The notes under the pieces were generated by a model. It was not told the origin of the DNA. It was given only the letters and a program-made list of their open reading frames with translations, and ran no database searches. From IMG/VR virus record IMGVR_UViG_3300044712_001255, positions 124,001-188,000 of that record: a stretch of 64,000 bases of DNA; one strand, written 5' to 3'. Positions 60,803 to 64,000 of this stretch are shown piece by piece. How positions within the stretch are numbered: the stretch's first letter is position 1; the number at the start of each line of letters is the position of its first letter. The position numbers and the translations under genes were made by a program.

Positions 60803-60943
60803 GTGATGATAGGTGTGATTGCCCACGTTGTCAGACAAGGCGCGCAAGATTTGGGTATATCGTAGCCGCTGCGACTGTGGTCTTTTACGTCGCTGTGATC
60901 GGTGTTTACGTTTGGAACCTCATAGAGGAAAGGAAACAGGACA

Positions 60944-61234
60944 ATGGAGACGTTTGATTTCGGCGTTGCACTCGTGAAGATGTCTCAGGGATATGCCGTT
61001 CGACGCGTTGGGTGGAACGGAAAGGGCATGTACATATTCATTACGACTCCAGCTTCTTTTTCGCCCGTTTTTGGAACGACAATGCACGCAGCTGAAAAGT
61101 TTGGCGATGATCAAATCTGTCAGGCAGATTTGCTACCATGTGTTGCAATGCGAACGGCAGACAAGAAAATCTTGCTTGGATGGCTCGCAAGTCAGACTGA
61201 CATGTTGACAAGCGATTGGGAGATCGCATCGTAA
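60944..61234 (+). CDS. DUF2829 / Tad2-like (Thoeris anti-defence) protein
   Basis: FDFG.AL..M..G..V.R.GWNGKGM.I...MRTAD...GWLASQTDML..DW. Confidence 0.8.
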   Translation: METFDFGVALVKMSQGYAVRRVGWNGKGMYIFITTPASFSPVFGTTMHAAEKFGDDQICQADLLPCVAMRTADKKILLGWLASQTDMLTSDWEIAS

Positions 61235-62242
61235 TGCAAAAGTACAGCATTCATTCGATCTCGTGTATTGATGGTGACGAGATCGTTCCGGGTGCAATGG
61301 TATGTCATTACATTGATCCGCTTTCTCGTGGCATGGTGGTATGGGTTGTTGATAACGATTGTGGTGTTGTCTGGAGCAAAGAACCCGTCAATCCTCTAGA
61401 CGGCATTTTCACAAAAATAAAGCCCGTTGGTATGTCAACAATCGCACAGCAGCTATGTTCTGTGCAACCTATGTCATTGCCCAGCGGATTGATATTCTAC
61501 ATTGATTACCAGTATGGCAAGAAAGTTGCAGATGGAAAGAATGACAAGCGCAGCAAATGCGCTCATTGGGGTAGAAGATCCTACATGCGAGATCGTACCC
61601 GGGATGCTCGTGAGTTCCCGTGCAGACGCAGGAAGTCTCGGCTTAGTAATCTCAGTATGCGAAAATAAGTGCGACGTGTTGTGGAGCGTTTTCCCACGTT
61701 TGATCATTGAAGCGCTTGATTTCACGTCAGAGAAGTTGTCAGTGAATTATTATATGGATTTTTCATGTCGTTAGTTGAATACACAAGTACAGCGCTTTCG
61801 CCAATTGACGAAGGCGATGAATTGAATCCTGGTGTGGCTATCACACATGATAAAGATAAAAGCGCTTATGGTATAATCGTTTCTGTTGACAAAGAAACTC
61901 GTGTGTGTTCAGTATTGTGGTCTCGCAAACCATTTACTGACATGTACCAAGACATTGATACTGGCACAATGCGTGATTTGATACATGCTGCGTTACGAAG
62001 ATGAATCAATGTTTCTTGAACGTACAAGAATATGGGATCAATTTTTGTTTCCGTGGAATGGAAACGATCAATATGAACCCGGAGATCTTGTTTATCGACG
62101 AGGCGATAGAAGATTGCTAGGACTTGTCATCTCGGTTGTCAATGAAGACATGACAATTTTGTGGAACAAACATAAACGCGGCGTAGGATTGCCTGTGCCT
62201 GGCGTGTATGTAAATATCTTTTCCAACATAGTGCAATCGTGA
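61234..62242 (+). other. Four tandem SH3/KOW-like ORFs (61234-61668, 61541-61774, 61765-62004, 61985-62242) with different C-terminal tails
   Basis: Shared PG-x-x-V...G-x-V-x-x-V...V-x-W core; the first tail matches a T4-like major capsid segment. Confidence 0.65.
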
Positions 62243-62264
62243 TCACCAAATGATACGGTGAATC

Positions 62265-63215
62265 ATGAGTTTAGGACTTTGTTGCCACTACCTGTCAGAG
62301 GTTCCAAATAAACGTGGGACATATCAAAACATCCTCAAACAACGTGTGTTGCAATTGGGTCGGTGGCAGGCTGGCGCGTATAGCGAAAAGTACGTGCGAC
62401 AGTTATACATCGACAATGTCAATACGTTGATTACGCAGTTGCCTGACATCTTCGAGCGTTACAAGGTATTTCGCTTTCCAAGTGGTATCTTTCCGCTTTA
62501 CGATGTCGTGCCACGCGAGTGGTGGGACAATGGCGTTATTACCACGATGCTCAGCGTATTGGGTAACATTGTCAAAGCGCATGGTGTCCGCGCGACATTT
62601 CATCCTGGACAATTTTGCTCTTTGACTTCTGACGATTCGCGTATCATTGCAAATTCTGTGCGCGAAATTAACCACCACGCGTGGATCTTTGATGAAATGA
62701 AGTTGCCTGCCACGCCGTTTCACGCTATCAATGTGCATGGTGGAAAAAGTGATAGGCAGGAACGCCTTGCGTTCATGTTAGACACGCATTCTGTCGGTCT
62801 TGATGAACATGAGTTATCATCCTCAGCGCGTGCTCGCATTACACTCGAAAATGATGAGTCATGTTACTCGGTTATTGATCTTCTTGAGATACACAAATTG
62901 ACCGGCGTCCCAATTGTCTTTGACTCTCACCATCACACATTCAATGATGATGGAATTGACATGGATCTTGCTTCCAAAGCATGCAAGGCGACGTGGTTGC
63001 CAAGCGGTTGCAAGCCGCTTCAGCACATCAGTAACAGCGATCAATTGCTTTCTGAATCAGCGTCGTTTATCAAGCGTCGAGCCCACAGTGATTACATCTG
63101 GCACATTCCTGAATGCCAGAGAATTGACGTAGTTAATGATATGATTAGCCTCGACGTAGAATGCAAGATGAAGAATTTGGCTGTAGACGCCCTCCAGAGG
63201 CTGTTGACTGGATGA
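62265..63215 (+). CDS. uvsE: UV damage endonuclease (UvdE/UvsE)
   Basis: LGLCC, FRFPSGIFP, FHPGQF, INVHGG, LENDE, FDSHHH, QHIS, HSDY, VECKMKN. Confidence 0.9.
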   Translation: MSLGLCCHYLSEVPNKRGTYQNILKQRVLQLGRWQAGAYSEKYVRQLYIDNVNTLITQLPDIFERYKVFRFPSGIFPLYDVVPREWWDNGVITTMLSVLGNIVKAHGVRATFHPGQFCSLTSDDSRIIANSVREINHHAWIFDEMKLPATPFHAINVHGGKSDRQERLAFMLDTHSVGLDEHELSSSARARITLENDESCYSVIDLLEIHKLTGVPIVFDSHHHTFNDDGIDMDLASKACKATWLPSGCKPLQHISNSDQLLSESASFIKRRAHSDYIWHIPECQRIDVVNDMISLDVECKMKNLAVDALQRLLTG

Positions 63216-63256
63216 ACACAACGCTCTAAAGATAGGAAAGAAAAGGTACAATACTT

Positions 63257-63544
63257 ATGAATGCGATGTCAGCGACCCGCAACCCCGACGCAGCTTCTCT
63301 TGGTCCCAATCAGACGGAGTTTCAGATCTACGTTGGCAGTAGGTCGCTCTTGAAAGATGGGCTTCACAAGCTTCTAGACTTCACAGAACACAAGCTTCTT
63401 AGATATGCAGAGAATGTTTTTGGTACCGAGAAGTTGAACGTAATGGTCTTGATCACAGAATATCGCAAGGGAAATGTGGCAGTGTGTTGGAAGCACGGCA
63501 AGCCACACTACATCCAGGTGAAACGAGAGTCTACTGGTCGTTGA
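63257..63544 (+). CDS. Hypothetical protein
   Basis: 95-aa ORF with a purine-rich RBS. Confidence 0.5.
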   Translation: MNAMSATRNPDAASLGPNQTEFQIYVGSRSLLKDGLHKLLDFTEHKLLRYAENVFGTEKLNVMVLITEYRKGNVAVCWKHGKPHYIQVKRESTGR

Positions 63545-63578: not shown

Positions 63579-64000
63579 ATGCTTGATGATTCAAAGTCAG
63601 ATAAGTCAACGCACGTCTTGTTTGGAGACGATGCAAAGAAAGCACTTTTAGCAGGCGCAGAGATTGTCGCCGAGGCTGTGGGTTGCACGATGGGTCCCCG
63701 CGGCAAGACAGTGTTGATTCAGCAACAGGGAAAGGCACCCGTCCTAACGAAGGACGGCGTCACCGTTGCACGATCCCTGCGTCTCAAAGATCCGGTGAAG
63801 CGCATGGGTGGCGACTTGCTTCGAGACGCAGCAACGCGCACCAATGAAGTCGCTGGTGATGGCACCACAACCGCCACAGTAATTTCGTATGCATTGATGC
63901 GCGAAAGTTACAAGCTGATCGCCGCTGGCGTTGATCCCATTGTGTTAGCAGATGACATCAAGAACGCATCAGAAGTTGCCCTGCGAACGTTGAAGGACGT
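63579..64000 (+). CDS. groEL: Chaperonin GroEL, 5' part (runs off the window; missing from the ORF track)
   Basis: Own translation: ...AVGCTMGPRGKTVLI...TKDGVTVAR...NEVAGDGTTTATV. Confidence 0.95.
   Translation, partial: MLDDSKSDKSTHVLFGDDAKKALLAGAEIVAEAVGCTMGPRGKTVLIQQQGKAPVLTKDGVTVARSLRLKDPVKRMGGDLLRDAATRTNEVAGDGTTTATVISYALMRESYKLIAAGVDPIVLADDIKNASEVALRTLKD

Follow-up and report, generated by a model that had tools for sequence, protein, structure and literature searches.

Among the triggers of bacterial immunity, the major capsid protein (MCP) and the portal of phages rank with the commonest, as seen with Lit, CapRel, Thoeris, Avs and Dsr1. In T4, the trigger of Lit is Gol, which spans 29 residues within the first quarter of gp23 and forms its most conserved region; it is sufficient as a peptide, binds domains II-III of EF-Tu and licenses cleavage by Lit (PMC3014915). 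Both Lit and CapRel have been said to detect MCP through short motifs (bioRxiv 10.64898/2026.01.04.697583), and EF-Tu recurs in MCP sensing (bioRxiv 10.64898/2026.01.04.697583; PMC3014915). Here, we describe an array of four tandem genes (g1-g4) within a window of 64,000 nucleotides (G000:C1:124001-188000) of the virus record IMGVR_UViG_3300044712_001255, which is 324,468 bp long; G000:C1 coordinates refer to the whole record and plain positions to the window. In the products of these genes a constant small barrel carries different tails, and the tail of g1 (tail 1) is a copy of a segment of the phage's own MCP. A constant barrel carrier with a disordered tail copying one head-protein segment is the architecture of a whole family of phage proteins.

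The closest described counterpart of tail 1 is Gol in T4 gp23, which activates the Lit protease and is a ligand of EF-Tu; tail 1 is homologous to this stretch (residues 57-96 of g1 align to gp23 86-133, E 4.5e-6). The MCP portion copied in tail 1, designated segment A, is the N-terminal motif that is best conserved in the MCP and presumably the region holding the Gol peptide in T4, where Gol reportedly occupies residues ~93-122. Tail 1 differs from Gol in being encoded apart from the MCP, at a distance of 140 kb from its gene, and in riding on a barrel carrier; in the g1 lineage, moreover, the motif has a degraded first half. Anti-defence mimics and sponges, such as the DNA mimic Ocr and Tad1/Tad2, are likewise small accessory proteins, the present proteins would similarly occupy a host factor, and a gene resembling Tad2 (Thoeris anti-defence 2) is the neighbour of g1; however, the mimicked object here would be the phage's own structural proteins, presented as interchangeable pieces on one scaffold. 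The capsid-targeting sequences of T4 internal proteins and the cargo-loading peptides of encapsulins share with this family a folded domain that ends in a short, disordered peptide and a link to an HK97-fold shell, whereas the known ones are not copies of core segments of the shell protein. No description of phage proteins displaying their own capsid segments was found in the literature searched, and the barrel-plus-tail architecture appears to be undescribed.

The g1-g4 array and its copy of a capsid protein segment

The first gene, g1 (61234-61668, plus strand, 144 residues), encodes a five-strand, SH3-like small beta-barrel (61234-61389, residues 1-52), the tail (61408-61527, residues 59-98) and an arginine-rich C-terminal extension (61519-61668, residues 96-144). 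Residues 59-98 are 57.5% identical (blastp, E 4.7e-12) to residues 86-125 of the phage's own MCP, a protein of 635 residues (G000:C1:44829-46736), and the local-alignment score of 117 was reached by none of 1000 shuffles. In addition, residues 68-105 match the Pfam family Gp23 (PF07068) with 29.7 bits (E 5.7e-7) against a curated cut-off of 24.4, which supports the original prediction that tail 1 resembles a T4-like gp23 motif, and g1 also matches PHROG 138, the major head protein. The Gp23 match covers just profile positions 18-55 of 376 and no full-length HK97-fold body is present; g2, g3 and g4 gave no match to Pfam Gp23 up to an E value of 1. Tail 1 scores 64 bits against the profile of the A-type tails of the family. 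When searched by tblastn in cultured phages, all of its matches (133/133) fell on MCP genes, and none of these phages contained a second Gol-like copy.

The likeness had been sought at both the protein and the DNA level and was found at the former only, since blastn of the array region against the MCP gene gave no match at tail 1. A run of 15 consecutive residues is identical between tail 1 and the MCP while 11 of the 15 codons differ, which argues that selection acts on the peptide. A comparison of 27 codons among the MCP, g1, its orthologues (P0002 on L005, a 3-kb metagenome contig syntenic with the window, and P0050 on L009) and a distant family member shows saturation at synonymous sites and a nonsynonymous divergence (dN) of 0.26-0.43. 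The lack of DNA similarity, the saturated synonymous sites and the dN together indicate that the copy is old, maintained as protein sequence and no recent duplicate. An origin of tail 1 through recent duplication or gene conversion of the MCP gene was considered and rejected for want of blastn similarity.

The other members of the array, all on the plus strand, are g2 (61514-61774, 86 residues; barrel ~61589-61705, tail 61706-61771), g3 (61765-62004, 79 residues; barrel ~61807-61941, tail 61942-62001) and g4 (61985-62242, 85 residues; barrel ~62054-62179, short tail 62180-62239), successive genes of the array overlapping by 155, 10 and 20 nt. That the four form a tandem series with a common core, as first proposed, was borne out: the open reading frames (ORFs) are in place, and five core residues (Pro-Gly, Gly, Val and Trp; P, G, G, V, W) are invariant. 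The barrel profile detects g2 (E 7e-15) and g4 (E 4.5e-14), and a search of the 324-kb genome with the core profile returned g1-g4 as the only copies.

The resemblance claimed for the remaining tails fared less uniformly. Tail 3, thought to resemble weakly a later gp23 segment, does not do so significantly by its own sequence (its score against the MCP was reached by 400 of 1000 shuffles, and it did not beat shuffles against the portal either), but its match to the profile of family C-type tails is weakly significant (4.8 bits, 3/300 shuffles). The claim stands only through the g3 orthologue on L005, whose tail matches MCP 418-439 with a score of 75 (0/1000 shuffles); a DNA alignment shows that tail 3 of the window is the L005 tail shortened by two deletions, and it is thereby recognisable as an eroded copy of MCP segment C. 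For tail 2, also held to resemble weakly a later gp23 segment, 751 of 1000 shuffles reached the score against the MCP and 751 of 1000 that against the portal; for tail 4 the corresponding numbers were 767 and 972, and neither tail matched anything among the MCP segment profiles. Likenesses suspected by eye between tail 2 and MCP segment B, and between tail 4 and MCP segment D or MCP 69-84, failed both the profile and the shuffle tests. An 18-residue likeness of tail 2 to a baseplate-wedge ORF (G000:C1:301403-303241, minus strand) is borderline (genome-wide shuffle P ~0.027) and absent from the L005 orthologue, so that a baseplate-wedge origin was rejected as well. Likewise, the proposal that tail 4 resembles a sheath N-terminus was not upheld. 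The phage has two adjoining sheath-like ORFs (G000:C1:67346-70378 and 70403-73438) of ~1011 residues each, with similar N-termini, both scoring under the Pfam sheath cut-off; shuffles reached the scores of tail 4 against them in 24/500 and 111/500 cases, its motif is absent from these proteins, and its best match genome-wide lies within the shuffle range.

An AlphaFold2 model of g1, built on a 78-row alignment, gives the barrel a predicted local distance difference test score (pLDDT) of 96-98 over residues 1-50, with five strands at residues 2-5, 9-11, 22-25, 32-39 and 42-49. After the barrel no secondary structure is modelled, and the chain is predicted to be disordered (pLDDT 55-62). The barrel thus resembles SH3-like small beta-barrels, such as SH3-B_UBE2O, KOW and the SlyD insert-in-flap domain, in its five strands and ~50 residues. 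It differs from them in that all Z scores of VIA-align, the highest being to the SlyD/FKBP26 insert domain, spectrin SH3 and KOW, are ≤5.1, a level that may mean a common arrangement only, and in that g1, g2 and g4 match no barrel family in Pfam or PHROG, g3 alone passing the Pfam cut-off for SH3-B_UBE2O (23.5 bits, E 7.2e-5, cut-off 22). Foldseek with the barrel returned no match at E 0.001 or better. We regard "SH3-like small barrel" as a fair description and not as an assignment to a family.

Beyond the motif, g1 continues for 49 arginine-rich codons in the -1 frame over the first 52 codons, or first half, of g2, whose start codon falls within codons of g1 for a conserved Tyr-Gly pair. In each of the three lineages compared (window, L005 and L009) this frame has stayed open, whereas the same frame of other barrel genes contains 2-7 stops in 20 of 21 cases. 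A 23-nt stretch of the overlap (61589-61611) is the most conserved DNA of the locus, and its sole variable site is synonymous in both frames. With both frames open and constrained across orthologues, g1 and g2 form an overprinted gene pair. Many A-type relatives have a different, non-overlapping basic extension, to which that of g1 shows no detectable homology. For the long extensions found in A-type and B-type relatives, this genome offers no match; they do not represent the MCP gene read in another frame, and no decayed barrel gene was found beneath them. As a side thought that we do not put forward as a claim, the arginine-rich extension may be set beside the arginine-specific protease employed by type IV Thoeris (bioRxiv 10.1101/2024.10.24.620036).

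Barrel-tail proteins in related phages

A profile built from 12 barrel-tail proteins and run on a set of 1.84 billion representatives retrieved 370 relatives at E 0.001 or better (representatives at 50% identity), none of which carries a name. They are annotated as hypothetical, and Pfam and PHROGs name just the Gp23 fragment. In nearly all of the best ~150, the barrel is joined to a single conserved MCP segment out of a set of four or five; portal segments are found in a few. Among 153 family proteins examined with phmmer, 115 match the MCP of this phage, and the matches fall into blocks: A (~75-130), B (372-406), C (413-444) and D (564-632), with a further segment N (MCP residues 3-43) matched by one protein. 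By profile, 91 tails are of type A, 24 of type C, 13 of type D and 9 of type B, with three double tails; the C motif is visible by eye in several tails without a profile class, and P0015 and P0077 are natural fusions of neighbouring tail types. The idea of a constant scaffold with swapped capsid-like tails, originally drawn from the four genes of the window, is right at the level of the family, with its at least 370 representatives and discrete segment classes, and holds more generally than those four genes could reveal.

Copies of the portal also occur. The tails of L012:2774-3061 and P0088 match portal residues 740-769 (E 6e-4 to 0.011), and a third family tail shows a weak match to portal 296-331. 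The T4-type portal of this phage is encoded at G000:C1:36260-39589 (L014:261-3590; PF07230, E 1.5e-70). Its ORF is unusually long (1110 residues), and residues 409-483 match an HNH endonuclease PHROG; a mobile or intein-like element may have been inserted there.

Segments A-D coincide with the conservation peaks of T4-type MCPs: across six diverse ones, the fraction of identity reaches 0.40-0.49 in A-D, compared with 0.19 outside the five copied segments. An AlphaFold2 model of the MCP (34-row alignment) was poor, with a mean pLDDT of 48, and was not used to map the segments on the fold. Purifying selection on the amino-acid sequence maintains the tails.

Several contigs from related uncultured phages bear the genes in tandem arrays. 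The order of tail types is B, C, D, A in L010; portal, B, two other genes, an unassigned tail, C, D, A in L012; an unassigned, weakly portal-like tail, C, D, a short tail and A in L004; C, A and a g2-like tail in L009; and A, unassigned, eroded C, unassigned in the window. On L005, the Tad2-like gene is followed by g1, g2, g3 and UvdE, g4 having been deleted according to the DNA alignment. In the tree of barrels the tail types are mixed, and barrels cluster by array and lineage; therefore, the carrier is exchanged between members of an array or homogenised there, whereas the classes of tail endure.

A word search with g1 retrieved the L005 orthologue P0002; P0003, in which the barrel is followed by segment A and the protein ends shortly past the motif; and two barrel-less proteins of 81 residues. 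Proteins of this latter kind, opening with MCP segment A, were seen at L006:6001-6246 and on L007 and L008, where they directly follow the large subunit of ribonucleotide reductase within the replication genes of a different phage. Like the barrel tree, they show barrel and tail to be independent parts.

The MCP of the phage has thousands of close relatives, many of them on contigs of 270-357 kb, and the cultured phages nearest by MCP are 37-47% identical. No close relative was found by megablast of 60900-63300 against cultured phages or by a scan of IMG/VR with g1, and LR756508, LR756511 and Flavobacterium phage immuto lack the barrel-tail family.

Genomic setting

The array lies ~140 kb from the head module, amid accessory ORFs. 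It is preceded by the Tad2-like gene (60944-61234, plus strand, 96 residues; PF11195, E 1.9e-19, 70.4 bits against a cut-off of 25), whose stop codon overlaps the start codon of g1 (TAATG) and which also precedes the g1 orthologue on L005. Among the ORFs scanned in the preceding 11 kb, none matched a family above its curated cut-off. The array is followed by a gene for the UV-damage endonuclease UvdE (62265-63215; PF03851, E 5e-45), a 95-residue ORF and, 1.3 kb downstream of the array, a gene for a chaperonin of the Cpn60 family (63579-64000) that is cut by the window end. The octamer of T4 late promoters, TATAAATA, occurs once on the plus strand and not at all on the minus strand of the whole genome, compared with ~8.7 expected per strand; such depletion implies that the late transcription signals of this phage must differ from those of T4.

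In related phages, proteins of ~890 residues with a major-vault-protein shoulder domain are encoded upstream of two of the arrays (L004:586-3288 and L010:678-3341), a methionine aminopeptidase gene is found nearby in L004 and L012, and L004 has an eIF-1A-like gene. Elsewhere in the same genome and outside the window, the minus strand of G000:C1:199000-214500 bears a tandem array of dozens of genes of 65-110 residues, marked by a Pro-Gly-Asp motif and a core resembling a barrel, in which the g1-g4 core profile detects only weak echoes (199-214 kb); these are probably the "PGD" genes to which the original prediction had compared g1-g4.

Possible roles of the displayed segments

A disordered peptide is free of the folding constraints of a capsid, so its conservation must stem from a reader of the linear motif. 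Among the explanations considered we favour, with a probability of roughly 0.4, that the proteins act by competitive mimicry of linear head-protein motifs, host surveillance being the likeliest target. An unfolded, exposed copy of a motif would occupy a cellular factor that reads the same motif on MCP or portal while these are still nascent or not yet assembled; candidates include a defence sensor of short MCP motifs, an EF-Tu-linked system and a quality-control protease. The barrel, together with the basic extension in the case of g1, would prevent the captured factor from firing or shield the genuine head proteins from it. Mimicry of this kind is favoured because all the conserved motifs of two head proteins are displayed, because barrel-less versions exist, because the copies erode independently, and because the setting is an accessory one beside an anti-defence gene. 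The string of accessory genes next to the Tad2-like gene fits host surveillance as the target. Copies erode or vanish between close relatives (g4 is gone in L005, and tail 3 has decayed in the window), a behaviour that is usual for arms-race genes. The proposal with which the analysis began, namely a decoy for capsid-sensing defences or an interference with competitors, is plausible. In a broader form, a clade of uncultured ~300-kb phages would practise "self-peptide display", the arrays jointly blunting the head-protein sensors of the host; this generalisation is more doubtful.

Several points weigh against competitive mimicry. Lit (through Gol and EF-Tu) and CapRel are switched on by motif binding, and a plain decoy would trigger them; the blocking role of the barrel, which would avoid this, is an assumption; and EF-Tu is too abundant for titration. 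Within the window, tails 2 and 4 have no mimicry signal of any kind. The linkage to Tad2 is found only in the lineage of the window and not in L004, L010 or L012, and the whole genome offers no T4-type late promoter signal that could be used for timing the expression of the array.

Among the alternatives, the tails might instead bind the parent protein, MCP or portal, as it folds or assembles, complementing a strand or a helix with the barrel as a steric cap, thereby delaying or regulating the phage's own head assembly or poisoning the heads of co-infecting T4-type phages. That the tails are conserved core elements of the MCP and the portal, both of them head-assembly proteins, is in keeping with such binding, as are the phage chaperonin gene 1.3 kb downstream and the near-identity of tail 1 to the phage's own MCP, which an MCP binder would need. 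The same identity, however, would mean self-poisoning unless expression were timed, the genes stand amid accessory ORFs with ~140 kb between them and the head module, and free erosion of tails in close relatives is odd for an assembly factor, so we regard parent binding as unlikely. A complex prediction for the MCP with residues 1-100 of g1 returned "no answer" (score 0.01) and counts neither way. Alternatively, the tails might target the barrel, with the arginine-rich, DNA-binding-like extension in g1, into the prohead for co-assembly and later injection as an early effector. Folded cargo with a disordered terminal peptide would suit this, and so would the basic extensions of many A-type members, that of g1 being preserved by dual coding; but neither a cleavage motif nor a cargo activity is evident, the barrel has just ~50 residues, and targeting peptides are not known to work by mimicking buried core strands, which makes capsid targeting improbable.

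Two further explanations were considered. Arrays usually contain each of the four MCP segments, with a recurring order that reads B-C-D-A in L010 and L012 and C-D-A in L004, and neighbouring types are naturally fused in P0015 and P0077, as might be expected if the A-D tails of one array co-folded into an MCP-like core that served as a decoy for sensors of the whole HK97 fold (Avs7, Avs8, Avs10 and Dsr1). Such a split pseudo-capsid is, nevertheless, decidedly improbable, considering that portal segments are interspersed within the arrays and that the lineage of the window and L005 keeps A while B-D decay or vanish. The decayed appearance of tails 2-4 of the window would also be compatible with non-functional debris, that is, a shattered second MCP gene or remnants of MCP recombination fused by chance to barrels. 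For tail 1 this is contradicted by identical residues with saturated synonymous sites and no DNA similarity to the MCP gene; moreover, the motif is kept in ~90 divergent A-type representatives, the segment classes are discrete, and there are portal copies too, leaving debris as the least credible explanation by far.

How phages cope with immunity triggered by constrained proteins, other than by mutating them, is an open question, to which this family gives a concrete candidate answer. If self-peptide display is true, it would be the first anti-defence strategy in which a phage mimics its own immune triggers piecewise; if the proteins serve assembly control or capsid targeting instead, trans-acting copies of capsid core segments would still represent a new principle. 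Students of protein evolution and engineers of peptide display may also take an interest in the swappable barrel-plus-peptide design and in the dual-coded extension.
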